A DNA stretch of 64,000 nucleotides from Macrostomum hystrix. Its lineage: Eukaryota; Animalia; Platyhelminthes. The position numbers and the translations under genes are program-made. The stretch lies in NCBI GenBank assembly GCA_950097015.1, contig CATNEN010000038.1, positions 2,294,001 to 2,358,000 of the forward strand. The letters are read 5' to 3'. Below are positions 1-30,144 of the stretch, piece after piece. Every line of letters begins with the position of its first letter. Within the stretch, counting starts at the first letter, position 1. The notes under the pieces are model-generated. The model saw only the letters and a program-made list of their open reading frames with translations, ran no database searches and was not told the origin of the DNA.

Positions 1-3000
1 GGCGGGCAGCCGCTGCCGCGACGTCTGCGAAAGTACATGGCGGCCAGGGGGCTGCACTGGCGCGGCCGCGGCACCGGATGATAAAACGAGTTCTCGAATT
101 CGTACAGGTAGGCCTGGGGACGGTGTGGGCTGACAGAATTTAGCAAACAATAAATCACCAACTAACCAGCGATCTGAGGTACTGCTCAGACACCCAGTCC
201 AGCACCAACTAACCAGCGATCTGAGGTACTGCTCAGACACCCAGTCCAGCACCAACTAACCAGCGATCTGAGGTACTGCTCAGACACCGAGTCCAAGCGC
301 CCTGGCCGGTCCTCAGCAATGTGACAGTTGAATCCGGGACTGGGAGGCACAATGGCCATGTCCTTGGGAGTCACAGGAGTCACGCGTCGGATCCGGCCGA
401 ACATAAATTTGAAGGCCACCAAGACGATCTGCTCGCCATCGTCGCCGGTCTCCAAGGCGGCCTCCTGAAGGCAGACGTCGCCGTGAACGCACAGATGAAC
501 ACCGGCGATGCAATAGCCAAGCGAGTTTATAGGACAGAAGCGCACCTTCAGGCCTTCGCGAAGGGTAAGGTCAACGAGCTCTTCGCTGGCCGCTGCCAGG
601 AAGCCGTAGTGAGTTGACATCTCCTCCTGGGCCAGGCCTAGGCGCGAGAATTCGGCGCACCGCTCTGCAGAAATGCAGGAGGCGGGGTGGACCATGTAAA
701 TGATGGCGGCATAGACATCTGATGTTTAATTATAGGTGCGGCAAGGTGATTGGCGGCATAGCTCTTTGATGTAGGAATGTAGGTGAGGTGCGGCAAGGTG
801 ATTGGCGGCATAGCTCTTTGATGTAGGAATGTAGGTAAGGTGCGGCAAGGAGAGTGGCGGAATAGCTCTTTGATGTGGGAATGTAGGTGAGGTGCGGCAA
901 GGTGATTGGCGGCATAGCTCTTTGATCTAGGAATGTAGGTGAGGTGCGGCAAGGTGATTGGCGGCATAGCTCTTTGATGTAGGAATGTAGGTGAGGTGCG
1001 GCAAAGAGAGGCGGCATAGCTCTTTGATGTAGGAATGTAGGTGAGGTGCGGCAAAGAGAGGCGGCATAGCTCTTTGATGTTGGATTGTAGGTAGGGTGAA
1101 ACCAGAAACCTGGAGTAAGAGTAAAAGGCGACGGCTGATGGCGGCATTACCCTTTGATGTTAAACATGTAGGTGAGAAGGTTGAGGGTGGCACTGCTTTC
1201 TGACAGTCATTGAATATGAACATAAACGAATGCGCGGCGTAAAAACCGAAGGAAGATCAGGTTTCAATAGTCCCTGCTCAAAAAGATATAAATAATAAAG
1301 GGACTGACTAGCTACTTAGATTAGAGCGAGTAGAGGAAAACGGTAACCCCTTTGCAGACATGAGTGTCGCCATTAACTAAATACTAAAGTGTAAACCAAT
1401 CTAAAAAGCGCAAAAAAGAAAATCTTTGAGGTCGGAAGACCACGGCTACAATTCAAGTTTACTTCTTGTGTTGTTTTGCTAAACTATTAGCAATTTTATC
1501 ATTACTCAAATCCAACAATATCCCATCACCTCGACTGAAATCTCAAATCCCTTAAACATCCTGTTGACCGGTTGCCCAAAATTAAAATTACAGGATAGCC
1601 AAACTACAAGCTTGTCAGAAATACAAAATGCGAGGATTCGTGTCACAGCTTGTCTAAAATCCCAGAATATCCTGATTACAGTTTGTCTAAAATCTCAAAT
1701 CCCAGGATGTCCTGATTACAGCTTGTGTTGAAATCCCGAATCCCATGATATACTACTTACAGTTTGAAATCTGGAATCCCAGGATGTCGTGATTAAAGTT
1801 TGTCTGAAATCCCGAATCCGAGGATGTACTGATTAAAGTTAGTCTGAAATCTGGAATCCCAGGATGTCGTGATTAAAGTTTGTCTGAAATCCCGAATCCT
1901 AGGATGTCCTGATTACAGTTTGTCTGAAATCCCGAATCCGAGGATGTCCTGATTAAAGTGTCTGAAATCCCAAATCACAGGATGCCCCGAATACAGTTTG
2001 TCTGAAATCCTAGGATGTCCTGATTACAGTTTGTCTGAAATCCTAGGATGTCCTGATTACAGTTTGTCTGAAATCCTAGGATGTCCCGAATACAGTTTGT
2101 CTGAAATCCTAGGATGTCCTGATTACAGTTTGTCTGAAATCCTAGGATGTCCTGATTACAGTTTGTCTGAAATCCTAGGATGTCCTGATTACAGTTTGTC
2201 TGAAATCCTAGGATGTCCTGATTACAGTTTGTCTGAAATCCTAGGATGTCCTGATTACAGTTTGTCTGAAATCCTAGGATGTCCTGTCCTGGCCGCATAC
2301 AATTTTTTGGTAACAAGAATAGCTAGGCCACTTTAACAAGGCTTTCTAAGGAGCAGAAGTGCTCAACGTTTTTGCGAAACAGGAAAACAGCATGTACGAA
2401 TGCCCAGCGCAAAGAACAAAGCCAGACCAGGCTTCTCTAATCCTTGCTCGAACAGAAAGCCGAGAGCCGAAGCGCCCATGGGGAATTCGCAGTCAGTTAG
2501 CAATCAATCTAGCCATACCCAAGCCCTCGAGCGAGCCAAACGGCAGATCCTGCCTGGGGCATCGGCCGAGTTGACGAGTAGGCCGTTTTTAGTATTTTTT
2601 GAGTTATTTATACTACTGCAAGTAGAGCAAATAGCACCTGACATTATCAGTAAAGAACTACTTATTGACTAGACTGGTAAAAATGTATCAGAGTCGGTCC
2701 AATAATCAAAGCCAATTTAAAATTTTGCGAAGCTACAATTATTCAAGAGGACTGACAATGAATTAGTGGTTAATATTGTAGCACACGTGTCCCCTCGCAA
2801 GTGCAATTTAATTCAGCAGCCTTGCAAGTTTACTTACTGTGCAGTCAATTTTAATTTGCAATAATCAGGGAAGGATTTATCTAGATCAGTTAGTAAAAAT
2901 GTACAGCTTAAAACTGTAGCCTGTAGCAGAACTGAATGTTAAGCACTAAGATAGGGAAATATGTGGAAAAACAAACAGCAACAACAAACCGATAAACTCC

Positions 3001-3275
3001 TCTTCAAAGTACTGGTTCTCCAGCATCTCCAGTTTGACCAGGCGCCATTGATCCAATGTAGCTGTTAGCGGATTAAGAAAGCTGTCTACAAAGCCGCGAT
3101 AAATCTGCGTGGCATAGTCTGAGCCCAGGTTGACAGTCTCACGAATCACTGCAGAATACAGAAAGTACAGCAATGTGTTTATTACACTTGTATATCATTA
3201 AATTTAACTGGCTGCTTCTATAGAAAAAAACTGGAGTGTAATAATCTTACCCCTCCGTGAGGAGTAATTATCCAT
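1..3275 (-). CDS. TASOR/TEX15-like DUF3715 (pseudo-PARP) domain protein, 3' part outside the window
   Basis: Phase-compatible exons 3251-3275 (frame open to acceptor at 3310, so more 5' coding is possible), 2990-3148, 261-664 and 1-113. Spliced protein: MDNYSSRRVIRETVNLGSDY...LENQYFEEEFIERCAEFSRLGLAQEEMSTHYGFL...EGLKV...SLGYCIAGVHLCVHGDV...VAFKFMFGRIRRV...PPSPGFNCHIA...YLRSLAYLYEFENSFYHPVPRPRQCSPLAAMYF. This is collinear with the TASOR DUF3715 motifs as recalled (NELLEKEF, SYAFL, EKGLHV, LGSPSMGVYLS, IFKIMKGKIK, PTPKHECHV, YYFYEY, RPRHVCPYAVVSF). Confidence 0.8.
157..294. repeat. 47-bp tandem triplication spanning the exon 3' end and splice donor
   Basis: accaactaaccagcgatctgaggtactgctcagacacccagtccagc about 3 times; each unit contains CTG|GTTAGT on the minus strand. 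Confidence 0.9.
733..1080. repeat. ~52-bp intronic minisatellite
   Basis: gatgtaggaatgtaggtgaggtgcggcaaggtgattggcggcatagctcttt, about 6.5 copies. Confidence 0.9.
1655..2285. repeat. 33-bp intronic minisatellite (longer degenerate units at the left)
   Basis: gtttgtctgaaatcctaggatgtcctgattaca repeated; source of the spurious SEILGCPDYSL ORFs. Confidence 0.9.
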
Positions 3276-3659
3276 GAGCAGCCTTGTACTGGGAGGCACA
3301 ATTAAGGAATCTGAAACAGGTAATAAAGCACATGACATGTGACTTATCTGTGACAATTAAATGCCCTAAAATAGCTCATGAATGCAAAAGAACACATTTA
3401 TGATAACTGATATATTTCACTAGAATGTGTTATATTAGACCTGGTGCATTTCTTAAACCATTTTTAATCAAGTCTTAGTGAAAAAAAGCAGTTAAATTAG
3501 GATTTGTATTTTCACTAACATGGAATATAACTAATTGTCATCTTGTTAATTTAAGATGATCAAAAAATAAATAGGAAATATATCTAGACACATAATTACT
3601 CATATAACGAATACAAGAATTTTCCTATGTGCATTTTGTATAAAACAATGTGGAATGGC

Positions 3660-7967: not shown

Positions 7968-10900
7968 TCAGCCCATGTTCGGCCGAGAAGGAATCGGCGG
8001 TGTACCAGACATTGGGCGCCTGCGGGAGACAGGGTGATTCGACAACTCGATAAATCGATAACTCGATAACTCGATAAATCGATAACTCGATAAATTGATA
8101 ACTCGATAAATCGACAACTCGATAAATCGATAACTCGATAAATCGATAAATCGATAACTCGATAACTCGATAACTCGATAAATCGATAACTCGATAACTC
8201 GATAAATCGATAAATCGATAACTCGATAAATCGATAACTCGATAAATCGATAACTCGATAAATCGATAACTCGATAAATCGATAAATCGATAAATCGATA
8301 ACTCGATAAATCGATAACTCGATAAATCGACAACTTAATAAATCGATAACTCGATAACTCGATAACTCGATAAATCGATAAGTCGAACGAAAATGTTAGT
8401 AAATGATATTCATTTTAAATATTTTTATGGAATTTTTATGGTTAAAATTTTAGATAAAATTCGCAACTAAACAAATATTGCGTGAATGATTGCAAGTAAC
8501 ATGCAAAGTAAAGCATGCAGTACTATATTTTATTGCATTCCTTAGAAAACAACAAGTACAAACTATGAAAAATATTTGGTATTGTTTTGCGTCTCATTAT
8601 TAGTATTTGAAAGAAGCAGAAAACGAATTATGAATAAACAGAACACCATGAAACTCAATTACAAATGCAGCTACAAAAACCTGACGCAAATAAAATCGAA
8701 CTCACGACGGAAGGAGAGGCGGTGGCAGACCGCCTAGACTTTCATTACTGAAAACTGCCCTCCTGTTTCACGTGGACAAGGCAGAGCGATTTCCATTTTA
8801 GCGAAACAGTTAAATCGTTGAACTGATCAAATTTCAAACAGGCTTAAGTCTCGTAAAATTGGGCTGAAACAAATAACTAGAAAAACAGACACCAGAGAAA
8901 CTGACAGACACCAGAGAAAAAATACTTTTTAAATAAACTTATCTGTTTTAAATCTAAAAAATATCTTCACTGAAAATATGCAGACCACAAAGCCATACAA
9001 ACTAGAAAATTTCTAAAAATTGTAGCTAAAAATAGATAAAAGACAATTCCTGAAACCGCTTTATGGCAACTCGTGACAAACATTCACATTGACTTTCGGA
9101 TGTAGAATACGGGAACTTGTGGGCCACATTTGGATTCAAATTTCGAAAAAAGACCGCTTGCATTTGATAAATAGGGTTTCAATTGAGATTTATAAATAAT
9201 GAATTTGCTTAGGAATTTTGAATAGCATGTTCAAGGGGATTTCTGAATAGGATGTTCAAGGGGATTTCTGAGTAGGATGTACAAGGGGATTTCTGAATAG
9301 GATGTTCAAGGGGATTTCTGAATAGGATGTTCAAGGGGATTTCTGAATAGGATGTTCAAGGGGATTTCTGAGTAGGATGTACAAGGGGATTTCTGAATAG
9401 GATGTTCAAGGGGATTTCTGAATAGGATGTTCAAGGGGATTTCTGAGTAGGATGTACAAGGGGATTTCTGAGTAGGATGTACAAGGGGATTTCTGAATAG
9501 GATGTTCAAGGGGATTTCTGAATAGGATGTTCAAGGGGATTTCTGAATAGGATGTACAAGGGGATTTCTGAATAGGATGTACAAGGGGATTTCTGAATAG
9601 GATGTACAAGGGGATTTCTGAATAGGATGTTCAAGGGGATTTCTGAATAGGATGTTTAAGGGGATTTCTGAATAGGATGTACAAGGGGATTTCTGAATAG
9701 GATGTTCAAGGGGATTTCTGAATAGGATGTTCAAGGGGATTTCTGAGTAGGATGTACAAGGGGATTTCTGAGTAGGATGTACAAGGGGATTTCTGAATAG
9801 GATGTACAAGGGGATTTCTGAATAGGATGTTCAAGGGGATTTCTGAGTAGGATGTACATGGGGATTTCTGAATAGGATGTTCAAGGGGATTTCTGAATAG
9901 GATGTTCAAGGGGATTTTTGAATAGGATGTTCAAGGGGATTTCTGAATAGGATTTCCATTTGATATACCGACTAAAACATGAAAACGCTCATGTGAATTA
10001 TTTAATATACTGTTTATGGGGATTTCTGAATAGGAATAGTGTTTGCTGAGTAGGATATCAACGTGAATTTCTTAGGAAGACAAATGTCCATCCAGCGTAA
10101 CCAGAAACCTGCATTGGCTGCCAAAGGCAAAATTTTTTGCCATAGCTTTTAGATACAATCTTAACTTCTTACGAGTAATAAGCCACCCCTGGCGGCAACG
10201 TGTGTCGATCTCTGTCGACGGCAGCAGCAGCCTCGAAGGTCTGGCTGAACGAGCTGGACGAGGCCGAGCGCTGCTGGGCCAGCGGCTTCCTGTACACGCG
10301 CGCACACGCATTTGACAGCATGTTGAAAATGCACAAAAATACTCTGCACTGCACTGACATTTTTACTAACAGTAGACTAAGCGAACATTTTTTGTTAATC
10401 TAACATTCATATTTGTAATGGAGGGGTCACTAACTAACTGACCGGATACGACAAATTCTCCGATGGAGTCTGCTTAAAAACACAGGGGAGTGCACTATTT
10501 CAGGAGCTCTCGGAGGCTCACATTAAAGCTTTGGCACAGAAGACAACAGGACAAAGGAGATATAGAGTGGGGATCAGGGAGACAGTCGGGATCAAAGAGG
10601 ACAGAATGAGAATCAAAGAGGACAGAAGAGTGGGGATCAGAGAGGGGATAAGGGAGGACAAAGTAGGAATCAGAGAGGACAGAGTGTGGATCAGGGAGGA
10701 CAGAGTGTGGATCAGGGAGGACAGAGTGTGGATCAGGGAGGACAGAGTGGGAATCAGAGAGGACAGAGTGGGGATCAGGGAGGACAGAGTGGGGATCAGA
10801 GAGGATAGAGTGGGGATCAGAGAGGACAGAGTGGGGATCAGACAGGACAGAGTGGGGATCAGACAGGACAGAGTGGGGATCAGACAGGACAGAGTGGAGA

Positions 10901-13900
10901 TCAGGGAGGACAGAGTGGGGATCAGACAGGACAGAGTGGGGATCAGGGAGGACAGAGTGGGGATCAGACAGGACGGAGTGGGGATCAGGGAGGACAGAGT
11001 GGGGATCAGACAGGACGGAGTGGGGATCAGGTAGGACAGAGTGGAGAGTGGAAAATACTATGGAAATCAAGGAGAAAAAGTAGTACCAAAAGGTGAGAGC
11101 ATGAGGAATGGGCATGAGGAGTGTGCATAAGAGCAGCGGAAGCGGCCGCAGCTAGTAATTTGGGCGGCAGACAGAGCTAGCGCAAAATCGCCAATTTATA
11201 GGCTGCCACAAGCGGTTACAAAAAGCGACGATTAAAGAAACTTTATAAAAAACTTACTCGGGCACCGGGGATTTCGATCGCCGTCTGGGTCGTTGGCGGT
11301 GGTCGCAGTCAGTTATTAATATATAATATTAATTTTGTACAGTACATAAACACAGAATAAAGAATTAAAAAGCTTTGTTATAAGTTAGGCTGTAGAGATG
11401 ATACCGTTGTGAACAAAAACTTCACCCTGGTTTCCATGGAAACATAACAGATAAAAAAACAGTGGCAAAGCAACTCACTGAGGTACCATCGGTGGTGGCA
11501 GCTGACCGCCTGGGGCGCCGCCGGGACGCGGCACCGACGGCGCCGGACGCGAGGGCACGGCCGGCCTGGCCTGAATTGGCGGCTGCATTGTCTGGGAGCT
11601 GCCGCCTCCGCCGACCGGAGTTCGCCGGCCCTGCATCGGCGGCGGCTGCTGCTGCGGCGGCTGCTCAGGCTGAATCCAGTCGTCCTTCACGGGCGGCGGC
11701 GTCGGTGTGTGCGTTGTGTTTGCCGAAACATCGCTGAGGATCTGCAGCGCCTCCTTGGTGGCTTTGTAGATGCGCAGAGTCTCTTCGCGACGCTGGGCCT
11801 CTTCGGGCGACTCCTCCATGAGCTGGCTCTGGTCGAAGCCGCCGTACAGCTGGGCCAGCATGGTGGACTTCAGGAAGTCCTTCAGCTGCGGGACAGAAAA
11901 AGGCGGCTACGGTTGGTGGGGAGCGTGTACATAGGGGGTTGTGTGTACATAGGGGGTAGGAGTTGTAGCGAGTGTACGTTTGGGATAGGGGTTGTTGGCG
12001 AGTGAGTGTACATTGGGGTTAGGGGTTGTTGACGAGTGAGTGTACATCGGGGTTAGGGGTTGTTGGCGAGTGAGTGTACATTGGGTTTAGGGGTTGTTGG
12101 CGAGTGAGTGTACATTGGGGTTAGGGGTTGTTGGCGCGTGAGTGTACATTGGGGACAGGGGTGAGGAGCCCATGTACAGTGTGTGGGGGCTGGAAAGGAG
12201 CTTTAACTTGTTGGGGTCAAGGTTGGTTGAAATAATATAAGCAAAAGCATTAAATGACAAATTTAATAGTAGCCATCACCGCAGCACTAATAATTCACGA
12301 AATTGCAGTAGTTATCAAATACAAATATGCACTAATGATTATGAAGCATTAAATTAACAAACGATCATAAGCAAATTAAGCAAACCTCATTGACCACAAT
12401 GTGAATGACAGTCTTGGGCACAATGTCTCGCTGGGTCTTGTCCACAATCTTCATGTAGGACTCAACCAGATTTCGAATGGTCTCCACCTGGCGCTCCATC
12501 TGGGGATCCGTGCTGCCCGTGTCCTGCTCCTGCTGCAGTTGGGGATTAGATTCGGGCGGATTACCAGAGGGGATTATTTTAAAGCGTTAATCAAAAGCAC
12601 ACTATCAGTCAATCAAAATGTCAATAGAAAAATCAAAGCCAAATCTAAGAAATCAATGAAATCTTAAAGCTTCTACCCAGCTGAAATAGCCTGAACTAGC
12701 TGCAGCACCCATCATACGCAGGTAACCAGCAGGTGGACAACAGTCTTTGGAAACAGGTCCCTGTGCTCGGAGACGCAGATGTCAAAGTAGCTGCAGACAA
12801 GATTGCGAATCACTTCAACCTGACGGTCCATCAGGCCGTCCGATTGTCGGCGCAGTTGGCCGAACTGCCCGGGCGGGTCGCTGTCCTCCCCAAAGCTATC
12901 CAGCTCCTTGTGCGGCACAGATAATTTCTACTTAAATATGCTAGGAGTATTATGCGTACTACTTCTGGACAGAAGTTTCAGTAGTGTGAGAGCATTTTTA
13001 CATTTTTGTACACATGAAATGGTAATATTTTTGGCAGTTTCACTGGGTGACTGACATAGAAAATAGCGTAAAAGTACGAGCGTATTTATAAGAAAATGTC
13101 ATGTATTCCAATATCCGAAAATATCAAATATCATGTACATCACCAAAATCTCATCAATACGAGACCCGGAATATCAACAATATGATACCCGAAATCTTAC
13201 CGATATGATACCTGAAATCTCACCGATATGATACCCGAAATCTCACCGATATGATACCCGAAATCTCACCGATATGATACCCGAAATCTCACCGATATGA
13301 TACCTGAAATCTCACCAATATGATACCCGAAATCTCACCGATATGATACCCGAAATCTCACCGATATGATACCCGAAATCTCACCAATATGATACCCGAA
13401 ATCTCACCGATATGATACCTGAAATCTCACCAATATGATACCCGAAATCTCACCGATATGATACCCGAAATCTCACCGATATGATACCCGAAATCTCACC
13501 GATATGATACCCGAAATCTCACCGATATGATACCTGAAATCTCACCAATATGATACCCGAAATCTCACCGATATGATACCCGAAATCTCACAGATATGAT
13601 ACCCGAAATCTCACCAATATGATACCTGAAATCTCACCAATATATTACCCGAAATCTCACTGATATGATACCTGAAATCTCACCAATATGATACCCGAAA
13701 TCTCACCATTATGATACCCGAAATCTCACCAATATGATACCCGAAATCTGACCAATATGATACCCGAAATCTGACGAATATGATACCCGAAATCTCACCA
13801 ATATGATACCCGAAATCTCACCAAAATGATACCCGAAATCTCACCAATATGATACCCGAAATCTCACCAAAATGATACCCGAAATCTCACCAATATGATA

Positions 13901-16900
13901 CCTGAAATCTCACCAATATATTACACGAAATCTCACCAATATGAGACCCGAAATCTCATCGATATGATACCCGAAATCTCACCAATATGAGACCCGAAAT
14001 CTCACAGATATGAGACCCGAAATCCCCCGCCAGTCTCACCTCCTCGGTCTCGCGAGCCTGCCTCTCCGGGTAGACGCCGGCGCGCAGGAAGGAGGCCTTC
14101 CAGCTGTCGACTTCGTCAGTGGACTCGGCGGCCAGCTCCAGAGTCTTGTAGTCTTTGTAGGTGTTGCTAGGCAACGGGTAGGTGTGAAGTACTGAATGCA
14201 ACTGTGAATTTTTTGGCTTCTGAAATTTATTCACAGGCTGCAAACACTCACCGGCCCTCCGAGTGAAACAGCACGAAGATGTTCTTCTTGCCGAAGAGGC
14301 CGCGAGATTCGCCGTCACGAATCTTGAGGCCGTCAAGGGGCAGCATGTACTTTTTGTCGCGCTCCTGCGGATGCGAAGGTTAGCAGTTTGTATTCTCTAA
14401 AAGTACTTTTTGGTGTCATAGGGTCATAGGTTTATTTGGTCATAGGGTCATTTAGTCATAGGTTTATATGGTCATAGGGTCATTTGGTCATAAGGTCATT
14501 TGTTCATAATGTCATTTGGTCATAGGGTCATTTGGTCAAAGGGTCATAGGGTCATTTGGTCATAAGGTAATTTGTTCATAATGTCATTTGGTCATAGGGT
14601 TATTTGGTCATAAGGTCATTTGGTCATAGGGTCATTTGGTCATAATGTCATTTGGTCATAGGGTCATTTGCATATAATGTCATTTGGTCATAGGGTCATT
14701 TGGTCATAAGGTCATTTGGTCATAGATTTATTTGGTCATAGATTTATTTGGTCATAGGCTCATTTGGTCATAGGGTCATTTGGTCATAAAAATAAAGTGC
14801 TGTTGCTCACCTCCTCGTCTTTGAACCAGCTCAGGGACTCGGCCGTTAGCACAAACCAGCACTCCTTGCCGCGCATGATTGACACATTGTTAATAGTCAG
14901 GTAGCCCTTGCGAATCACCTGCAAATGATTGGTATTGTTTGTATTACTGTGAGCAAAAAACTGAAATAAATCATCGGCATTTTAGGCCAACATACACGGC
15001 AACAAGAAAGCGTTCACTAAAAGAGTGAAAGCCGTCAGAGAAGAAAATCAAATAACTGGGGCAACACACCAGAGCTAGACTAAAACTAGATAAGAAGGCC
15101 AGCTACTCAGCCAGCCACTGCTGTGCTCAACACAAAAGCTCAGTTGCCCCACACTGAGCAATGCAACTCGCAAGACACATTTTTAAGTGGCACTAATCAA
15201 TTTGTGAAAAAAACGGCTTGAAACACTAAAGGACAAGCTAATTCTGTGTTTACCTGGTTGGCCACTCGCTCCTTTCTGGTGCTCTCGGTTCTCTGCTGAG
15301 CACTGCGGGAGAATAAAAGACAACGAACATTTGATTTTCATTGATGCTAGAAAACGTTTACTAGTGCCGTCGAACAAAATTTTTATCAATCTGCACAACC
15401 TTATTTAGACACCCTGACATAATGAAGAGTTTTGGGGATAACTAAGATGAGGACTTTTGTATTACAGCAAGGATAGATTCCTAGGGATTACAACAGCAAG
15501 GATAGATTCCTAGGGATTACAACAGCAAGAATAGTTTCTTAGGGATTATAACAGCAAGGATAGATTCCTAGGGATTATAACAGCAAGAATAGTTTCTTAG
15601 GGATTATAACAGCAAGGATAGATTCCAAGGGATTATAACAGGAAGGATAGATTCCTAGGGAGTATAACAGCAAGGATAGATTCCTAGGGATTATAACAGC
15701 AAGAATAGTTTCTTAGGGATTATAACAGCAAGGATAGATTCCTAGGGATTCTTACAGCAAGGATAGATTCCGAGGGATTATTAAATCGAGGAAAGATTGC
15801 TAAGGGATTATTACAGCATGGATAGATTCCTACTAAGGGATTATTACAGCATGGATAGATTCCTACTAAGGGATTATTACAGCATGGATAGATTCCTACT
15901 AAGGGATTATTACAGCAAGGATAGATTACTAGGGATTACAACAGCAAGGATAGATTCCTAATGGATTATTACAGCAAGGATAGATTCCTAGGGATTATTA
16001 CAGCAAGGATAGATTCCTAGGGATTATTACAGCAAAGATAGATTCCTACTAAGGGATTATTACAGCAAGGATAGATTCCTACTAAGGGATTATTACAGCA
16101 AAGATAGATTCCTACTAAGGGATTATTACAGCAAGGATAGATTCCTACTAAGGGATTATTACAGCAAGGATAGATTCGTACTAAGGGATTATTAAATCAA
16201 GGATATATTCCTAAGGGATTACTACAGCAAGGATAGATTCTTCTAAGACAGCTCTTGAACACAACAGTGGCCTTACTTGGCGAAGCCGATGAAATCCTCG
16301 TGATTGGTGTTCATGTAGGCCAGCTGAATGTCCACCAGCAGCATCAGCTGGGATTTGGCTCTGGTCTCCTGCTCCCTTACCCTGTTGGTGACGATGCTTT
16401 CAACGGCCTCGCGCAGTCTGGGATAGCAGGCCATGCGCTGAGTGCACTTGTGCACCACGTTAATCAGCTCCTCCACCACCATGTCGACGCACTTCAGCGT
16501 CGGCTCCTTCAGCCGGATGATCTGCTGCTTGACAATGCGCTCAAATGCCATGTCGGGTGTGAACAACCCGGTTCTGCGGGTTGGAGGGCGTTCGGTCATC
16601 TGGGATTAGTGATGTCTAGGGTGTAAAATCTGGGATTGACGATTTCAAGGAAATATAGTCAAGGATTAGGGATTTTTTAGAAATGCATTGTGGGATTCTA
16701 GATTTTTTAGGAAATAGAATACGCGATTAGGAGTTCTAAGAAACGGAATCAAGGATTAAGCATAAAGGATTATTGAATCGGGAATTGAAAATCTAGACTG
16801 AATCTTAGATAAAGGATCTAGGATTTTATCTGGGATTTAGGTTCTAGGATTTGATCTGGTTTTAAGGATCTAGGATTTGATTTGTGATTAAGGATCTAGG

Positions 16901-29836: not shown

Positions 29837-30144
29837 GCAGAGGTTGTAGCCTAGTGGTTAGGGCGTCGGACTCACGACTTGAAGGTCGGGGGTTCGATTC
29901 CCGACTCCACTGGAACAATTTGCGTCCTTTAGCAAGACACTTAACTCTGCATTGCTTCAGTTCACCCAGCTGTTAAATGGGTACCAGCATCAGCTGGGAT
30001 AATTGAAGGTGGGTGTGGCGTCCCCCCAGTCCGTGGACTGAACAGCTGTACGCAGCCTTCAGATGCGCCGCGCATTAGCTGCGGCTGCACATCTGGCCCA
30101 ATTGGGGCAGGTGTAATCAATTATTATTAATTATTATTATTATT
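29837..30144 (+). mobile_element. tRNA-derived CORE-type SINE, family A, near full length
   Basis: A box TAGCCTAGTGG, B box GGTTCGATTCC, CORE-like agcaagacacttaactc...cacccagctgttaaatgggtacc, (ATT)n tail. Related copies at 35232-35490 and 60790-61049. Confidence 0.85.

Follow-up and report, generated by a model that had tools for sequence, protein, structure and literature searches.

The DUF3715/RDTS domain is essential for the somatic and embryonic silencing of LINE-1 elements and retroviruses by HUSH, and for the piRNA-directed silencing by TEX15 (PMC10578480). Both experimentally studied carriers of the domain, TASOR and TEX15, act in RNA-directed transposon repression, and in a domain swap their DUF3715 domains proved interchangeable for LINE-1 silencing, across about 450 million years (PMC10578480). 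In TASOR, the domain is essential for silencing and dispensable for complex assembly and chromatin localisation; L184 occupies the position of the PARP histidine, and of the PARP residues Y217 alone is conserved (Douse et al., PMC7532188). The occurrence of DUF3715 outside vertebrates, across metazoa, was published in 2023 by the study that found the TEX15 architecture to be vertebrate-specific (PMC10578480), and DUF3715-only genes of cnidarians were described in a 2026 preprint (bioRxiv 10.64898/2026.09.07.749791). Here we describe a DUF3715 gene of the flatworm Macrostomum hystrix, located on the minus strand at the left end of a 64,000-nucleotide stretch (C38:2294001-2358000; hereafter, the window) of the published assembly, which comprises ~220 Mb in 42 contigs (PMC10468722). 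The genome scans reported below covered the whole assembly (220,453,370 bases, 42 contigs).

Positions 1-3310 of the window make up three quarters, counted from the 5′ end, of a four-exon gene that is expressed and receives a spliced leader (SL) by trans-splicing. Its product belongs to a short, DUF3715-only family of spiralians (annelids, nemerteans, a brachiopod and macrostomid flatworms) with a likely place on the TEX15 side of the domain tree, a reading that, taken together with its proposed function, we put at roughly 0.75. That the gene and its domain are both real is next to certain. The elements of the gene, in window coordinates, are as follows.

3311..3312, minus strand: trans-splice acceptor AG, in the context ...cctgtttcag/ATTCC; transcript contigs depart from the genome at 3311
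3251..3310, minus strand: exon 1, with the 5′ untranslated region (UTR) at 3310-3276, the ATG at 3275-3273 and coding sequence at 3275-3251
3149..3250, minus strand: intron 1, 102 nt, GTAAGA...TGCAG; joint found in contigs of three runs
2990..3148, minus strand: exon 2, IRETVNLGSDY...NQYFEEEFI, the N-terminal piece of the pseudo-PARP fold, beyond the Pfam model
665..2989, minus strand: intron 2, 2325 nt; joint found in contigs of four runs
261..664, minus strand: exon 3, the DUF3715 core, 134 whole codons, with the match to Pfam PF12509
114..260, minus strand: intron 3, 147 nt; joint found in contigs of three runs
1..113, minus strand: start of exon 4, the last exon, with the final strands of the domain, AYLYEF...RPRQCSPLAAMYF

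The four exons (3310-3251, 3148-2990, 664-261 and 113-1) had been proposed as a phase-compatible minus-strand series in an earlier note made from the letters of the window alone, and the proposal is borne out by their translations and by the splice dinucleotides, which are GT..AG in all three introns. Exon 1 codes for MDNYSSRR and ends one base into a Val codon (g/TG); a Glu codon (G/AG) is likewise split between exons, and the end of exon 3 falls on a codon boundary. Exon 4 extends for 688 coding bases to the left of the window, up to a stop codon at C38:2293310-2293312, and comprises 267 codons in total; the 3′ UTR reaches about C38:2292830-2292845. The encoded protein is 463 residues long (8+1+52+1+134+267). 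Its start, MDNYSSRR, matches the MDKYSSRR of the ortholog in M. lignano, and by reading, neither the SL nor the 5′ UTR holds an ATG in frame with it. Upstream coding exons were sought from 3311 to the end of a dynamin gene at ~11475, where only repeat-derived open reading frames (ORFs) were found.

Transcript contigs of four public runs were aligned to C38:2292601-2298400. Those of three runs, which belong to one 2020 study, have 0 mismatches to the locus, and each of these runs covers all four exons, with a single contig in two of them and two overlapping contigs in the other. The contig joints at 3148/3251, 664/2990 and 113/261 are CT..AC on the plus strand, which corresponds to GT..AG on the gene strand, the 113/261 joint being an alternative '+1' placement of the alignment cut. 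The fourth run, from a different study, contains the 664/2990 joint. All of the junctions on which the earlier note had staked its model (3251/3148, 2990/664 and 261/113) are present in the contigs. Because spliced contigs arise only from RNA, the DUF3715 gene is expressed; the contigs show expression, not its level or tissue.

Past window position 3311, the transcript contigs carry 23 letters that are absent from the locus (reverse complement, TGCGAAGACTCAATTTATTGCAT). Together with the next G, these letters form a 24-mer that occurs, letter for letter, at 29 places in the genome; most of these belong to tandem arrays on contigs C15, C17 and C42, with a period of about 11.6 kb. A copy of the SL RNA gene on contig C1 has CGGTCTCTTAC before the 24-mer and GTAAG after it, and the leader on the window transcripts is the 35-nt one that has been reported from M. 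lignano (PMC8629364). With the SL at the 5′ end of the transcript, 3311/3310 is therefore a trans-splice acceptor and exon 1 the first exon, with its own ATG, and not, as the earlier note had it, an exon preceded by an internal acceptor at 3310. The terminal ATG of the leader is out of frame with the DUF3715 ORF and opens a mini-ORF that meets a stop after three codons.

Two of the introns are rich in tandem repeats. Three copies of a 47-bp unit (98% matches, Tandem Repeats Finder) occupy window positions 156-295. The array takes in the last part of exon 3 with the GT donor site there, and two further copies of this stretch account for most of intron 3. The exon 3 donor is consequently triplicated, and the transcripts use the first copy only (261/260); splicing from either of the others would throw the reading frame out, as 47 is not divisible by 3. 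Intron 2 contains minisatellites of 52 bp in seven copies (734-1092) and arrays of 33, 66 and 99 bp in about 10-18 units (1658-2286), which are the source of the long, repeat-derived ORFs listed for this region.

The M. lignano ortholog (BOX15_Mlig000758g2; Mlig000758.g2; PAA83647.1; UniProt A0A267GDX0) has 488 residues, 25 more than the window protein. The two are identical at 7/8 residues of exon 1, 46/51 of exon 2 (residues 10-60) and 120/134 of exon 3, i.e., ~90% over the domain exons, whereas exon 4 is only about 44% identical (BLASTP), with many insertions and deletions. Both have the same layout, the same conserved islands in the tail and matching residues where the exons meet. This best protein match, at 90% identity, agrees with the suggestion of the earlier note that the DNA was probably that of a flatworm. 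UniProt names the ortholog 'TASOR pseudo-PARP domain-containing protein', by automatic annotation only.

Against the Pfam DUF3715 profile (PF12509; gathering cut-off 28.5 bits), exon 3 scores 46 bits (E 6.9e-12) over profile positions 2-108, and the opening 22 residues of exon 4 align with positions 129-150 (E 0.0076), collinear with exon 3. The genome-wide DUF3715 scan gives 44.8 bits at the window locus, and the M. lignano ortholog scores 75 bits on the same profile. The domain had been named correctly in the earlier note, and the seven TASOR-like motifs quoted there all occur in the exon translations. Residues 28-222 of the M. lignano ortholog align to the TASOR chain of Protein Data Bank (PDB) entry 6TL1 (phmmer, E 1e-13), with residues 28-62 representing the exon 2 part; exon 2 is therefore part of the fold, though it lies N-terminal of the Pfam model. 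An extended hidden Markov model (HMM) of the domain matches exons 2, 3 and 4 collinearly (exon 2 at positions 7-56, E 5.9e-7), and, as the M. lignano ortholog is included in this model, the match is a matter of consistency, not independent proof.

The AlphaFold2 (AF2) model of the M. lignano ortholog has a predicted local distance difference test (pLDDT) score above 90 over about residues 10-228. A Foldseek search with this model ranks 6TL1 first among PDB entries (E 1.1e-18, TMt 0.88, root-mean-square deviation 2.5 Å, 25% identity), in accordance with the TASOR-like PARP fold predicted in the earlier note, and the next matches are tankyrases, PARP10, PARP12 and PARP1, at E about 1e-9. In the phmmer alignment to 6TL1, the PARP His position (TASOR L184) is occupied by the Leu of HYGFL and the PARP Tyr position (TASOR Y217) by the His of GVHL. 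The placement of HYGFL at the degenerate PARP His position by the earlier note holds for the Leu of this motif; its His sits four residues upstream. The loop between β8 and β9 is similar in length to that of TASOR, and an RPRQC.P motif is present. Human TASOR in 6TL1 shares the fold, the Leu at the PARP His position and the RPR(Q/H)xxP motif that follows the extended β8-β9 loop, and differs in keeping Y217, where the Macrostomum protein has His. We infer that the window protein cannot ADP-ribosylate. ZAP/PARP13 and plant RCD1 are comparable dead PARP folds, in which a degenerate NAD+ site accompanies use as a non-enzymatic module (PMC7532188); they represent other families, and the Pfam and fold searches put the Macrostomum protein in DUF3715.

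A HMMER scan of 1.84 billion representative sequences with exon 3 returned 65 hits. The list is headed by two M. lignano proteins, followed by a fragment at 54% identity, by Owenia and Helobdella and then by Lingula, Tubulanus and Lineus, with Capitella as a cluster member; among the named hits of this single-exon search, there is no cnidarian protein at E 0.001. These annelid, nemertean and brachiopod relatives are short proteins with DUF3715 as their only domain: Owenia fusiformis CAH1772610.1 (661 residues), Helobdella robusta XP_009021406.1 (532), Capitella teleta ELU13889.1 (556), Lingula anatina XP_013395306.1 (622), Tubulanus polymorphus XP_074655125.1 (578) and Lineus longissimus XP_064643369.1 (539). 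Like the window protein, they consist of an N-terminal domain and a long, disordered tail of low complexity, within a total of about 430-660 residues; identity over the domain is 24-38% (named members, phmmer list), and all are uncharacterised. The tails of the annelid and nemertean proteins carry one or two copies of the motif NPxLxxIVxxINAK, which is found in Owenia, Helobdella, Capitella, Tubulanus and Lineus and in one unnamed protein of 432 residues; Lingula has only a degenerate form, which the scan missed. None of the collected TEX15, TASOR and long mollusc proteins contains the motif.

Among vertebrate proteins, the best hits in the phmmer list are those of TEX15, which outscore TASOR (for example, a mouse TEX15 isoform, E 8.8e-13, 34% identity). 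Vertebrate TEX15 is 2000-3200 residues long, as compared with 463 for the window protein, and possesses the PF15326 domain, which the window gene lacks. The cnidarian 'truncated Tex15 homologs' (bioRxiv 10.64898/2026.09.07.749791) resemble the window gene in having DUF3715 as the sole recognisable domain, in a different phylum.

The phylogenetic position of the gene was examined in an unrooted maximum-likelihood (ML) tree (model LG+C20+F+G4) of the domain, cut from 54 proteins, together with the domain exon of a second M. hystrix gene on contig C8 (see below); near-duplicates and fragments of fewer than 170 HMM positions were left out, and long proteins were labelled by their similarity outside the domain and by database names. 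Sampling followed similarity to the query, and TASOR is therefore under-sampled. A branch with support of 100/99 divides a TASOR side from a TEX15 side. Vertebrate TASOR falls on the TASOR side, as do the mollusc 'TASOR-like' proteins, with which the C8 paralogue groups (99/96). On the TEX15 side are vertebrate TEX15 (99/97), long proteins of mollusc, brachiopod and hemichordate origin, and the short spiralian clade (94/88). The Macrostomum ortholog lies within this short clade and outside the vertebrate TEX15 clade, in an invertebrate grouping supported by 90/81. On this domain tree, the window gene likely belongs to the TEX15 side.

The layout of the window protein is simple: a DUF3715/RDTS domain of ~225 residues, from about residue 10, is followed by a tail of ~240 residues rich in Ser, Pro, Ala and Gln. 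About 40 of the 267 codons of exon 4 serve to complete the domain. The earlier note had looked to a leftward extension of the gene for a SPOC domain; what lies there is the rest of exon 4, ending in its stop codon, and in all 267 residues of this exon there is no Pfam match and no SPOC, DomI, DomII or PIN. In the AF2 model, the tail of the ortholog is predicted to be disordered apart from a single helix (residues 305-321). Several islands of the tail are kept in both Macrostomum species, namely RRRRGSG.PPKPPQFLP, LAPDVASAVGSVLSELR, LDGIRGFLKNA, PRRNAFL and NRFHPY, of which LAPDVASAVGSVLSELR corresponds to the predicted helix. Another stretch of the Macrostomum tail, APDVASAVGSVLSE, is at best a degenerate form of NPxLxxIVxxINAK.

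The domains that accompany DUF3715 in the vertebrate proteins were also sought elsewhere. For the TEX15 domain (PF15326), the genome scan is blank, and neither exon 4 nor the M. lignano ortholog shows a match. PIN (PF24630) has no match in the genome scan, a blank that is not proof of absence. For DomI/TASOR_alpha-beta (PF23314), the sole match in the genome is at C38:7974042-7974293 (-), with 32.4 bits, 5.7 Mb from the window gene; a relaxed HMM scan finds no DUF3715 within 20 kb of it. This match lies in a GC-rich gene of several exons.

The genome scan gives a second DUF3715 match, with 45.6 bits, at C8:4453682-4454059 (+). This domain exon is followed by an exon of 1123 codons, and homologs in M. 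lignano, of 771-786 residues, unite both parts. The long exon contains a conserved region of globular appearance, long repeats of Thr, Pro, Ala, Val and Ser, a stretch rich in RS and, at the C-terminus, a conserved helix. The globular region was examined for a SPOC, and no match of any kind was obtained by Pfam, by a PDB sequence search, by phmmer against the collected DUF3715 proteins or in the ESM Atlas; when the M. lignano homolog was modelled with AF2 on a 9-row alignment, the middle region had a pLDDT of about 25.

Other components that the earlier note had suggested searching for, Periphilin and MORC, are represented in the genome by domain matches. Periphilin_C (PF25234) has three strong loci, at C39:18470366-18470569 (+), C10:2779914-2780108 (-) and C8:133085-133285 (-), with 100, 85 and 79 bits, respectively. 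The C39 periphilin-like gene codes for 461 residues, in which an RRM-like N-terminal part is followed by an RS-rich region and by the C-terminal helices of periphilin. MORC S5 (PF17942) has loci at C37:228211-228594, C38:9482959-9483345 and C32:950413-952436 (64-86 bits), one of which contains an internal TAA. A complex predicted between residues 88-162 of exon 4 and two copies of the C-terminal domain of the C39 periphilin-like protein has a median score of 0.33, where the mark is 0.34, and speaks neither for nor against an interaction. A HUSH-like toolkit is plausible in this flatworm, with the C8 gene, and not the window gene, at its centre.

What the window protein may do is suggested by the studied carriers of its domain. 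The DUF3715/RDTS domain would be the effector, acting as a stand-alone module in nuclear, RNA-directed transposon repression; this role is proposed because the vertebrate TEX15 and TASOR domains are interchangeable and the domain is essential for silencing. The islands of the tail may be docking motifs for a targeting partner, either of PIWI type, as for TEX15, or of periphilin type. A role of the window gene in transposon silencing, argued by analogy, is in our estimate somewhat short of an even chance. The fuller proposal, that the short spiralian proteins are a stand-alone RDTS silencing module, the invertebrate counterpart of the TEX15 domain, docked by its tail to a nuclear PIWI or periphilin-like protein and operating beside the separate TASOR-side gene on C8, is tentative and, taken whole, unlikely.

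Several observations weigh against membership in the short spiralian family on the TEX15 side, or against the silencing role, and should be set beside the evidence above. In an approximately unbiased (AU) test, moving the ortholog to the TASOR side is not rejected (p 0.198), and the branch of the Macrostomum ortholog is long (1.29). For both structure and tree, the M. lignano ortholog, at 90% identity, stood in for the joined window protein. The tail motif of the family, NPxLxxIVxxINAK, is absent from the Macrostomum proteins in a regular-expression scan. With respect to the active site, the call on the H-Y-E triad covers the His and Tyr positions only, and TASOR Y305, which is essential in TASOR, aligns to the Phe of YLYEF with MAFFT as opposed to an Asn with phmmer. 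Finally, in the literature, no paper mentions Mlig000758, none ties TASOR or TEX15 to flatworms, and no experiment on any member of the short DUF3715-only family is reported.

Among the alternatives to a silencing role, the one that survives best is that the protein is a pseudo-PARP adaptor with a job unrelated to transposons, whether in meiosis or DNA repair, as first described for TEX15, or in a ZAP-like binding of RNA for antiviral or mRNA control. The molecular activity of DUF3715 is not known even in mammals; the TASOR domain binds single-stranded RNA weakly (PMC7532188); outside the domain, the short architecture shares nothing with either TEX15 or TASOR; and the cnidarian DUF3715-only genes are discussed in the context of meiosis (PRDM9) (bioRxiv 10.64898/2026.09.07.749791). 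There is no direct evidence to counter such a function. The repression of transposons by both studied carriers, and the exchangeability of their domains (PMC10578480), nevertheless argue for silencing, and we regard the adaptor with another job as distinctly unlikely.

Alternatively, the window gene could be the flatworm ortholog of TASOR, i.e., the protein that would scaffold MPP8 and periphilin into a HUSH-type complex, as the headline of the earlier note, a 'HUSH-type factor', implied. The closest solved structure is indeed 6TL1, though the PDB offers no TEX15 structure as a competitor, Periphilin_C has three strong loci in the genome and MORC several, and the AU test leaves a joining of the TASOR side unrejected. 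Against this stand the 463 residues of the protein, without SPOC, DomI, DomII, PIN or the mapped periphilin-binding segment, whereas PF23314 is found elsewhere in the genome and PF24630 nowhere; its ortholog is placed across the 100/99 branch from TASOR in the ML tree, the TASOR side is occupied by the C8 gene, and vertebrate TEX15 ranks above TASOR in the phmmer list. We therefore consider TASOR orthology very improbable, and the window gene is probably not the counterpart of the HUSH core. The two-way wording of the earlier note, 'TASOR/TEX15-like' and 'HUSH-like or piRNA-coupled', was wide enough to cover this outcome, whereas its headline is not supported. That the protein is an active mono-ADP-ribosyltransferase of the PARP family is extremely improbable, in spite of the fold matches to tankyrase, PARP10, PARP12 and PARP1 (E about 1e-9), given the Leu and His at the His and Tyr positions of the triad (aligned to TASOR 184 and 217), the wide lead of the pseudo-PARP family over real PARPs in both Pfam and fold matches, and the failure of TASOR itself to bind NAD+ analogues (PMC7532188).

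The surroundings of the gene can be described briefly. Upstream, on the same strand, lies the dynamin gene mentioned above, at about 11475-15000 (-), with PH, GED and a proline-rich C-terminus seen in its ORFs; two similar GED-like ORFs are located at 12365-12499 and 12712-12918. The interval between the DUF3715 and dynamin genes holds tandem arrays of 8 bp in 43 copies (8039-8386), 25 bp in 30 copies (9215-9953) and 21/63 bp in 19 copies (10564-11044). A tRNA at 29840-29909 (+) (RF00005, 31.8 bits) is the only Rfam match in the window.

With the domain already known across metazoa and the M. lignano ortholog already labelled in UniProt, a DUF3715 gene in M. hystrix comes as no surprise. What is new is a verified gene model in this species, the recognition, from sequence comparison, of a short spiralian DUF3715-only family with a tail motif of its own, and, likely, a flatworm with one gene on each side of the split between TASOR and TEX15. 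Structure-function studies of the domain are hampered by the very large size of both mammalian carriers and by the restriction of TEX15 activity to the male germline (PMC10578480). A protein of 463 residues, consisting of little beyond the domain and a tail, would offer a much simpler handle on DUF3715/RDTS function, in a genus of small, transparent flatworms of which M. lignano is amenable to transgenesis (PMC5173321). The gene could show whether RDTS-based silencing predates the vertebrates, and the presence of TASOR-side and TEX15-side genes in one genome, together with periphilin-like and MORC genes, makes this question one that can be asked directly. If the proposal of a stand-alone silencing module is true, flatworms would have, like mammals, two parallel RDTS-based arms of transposon silencing, in animals where RNAi and transgenesis are routine.

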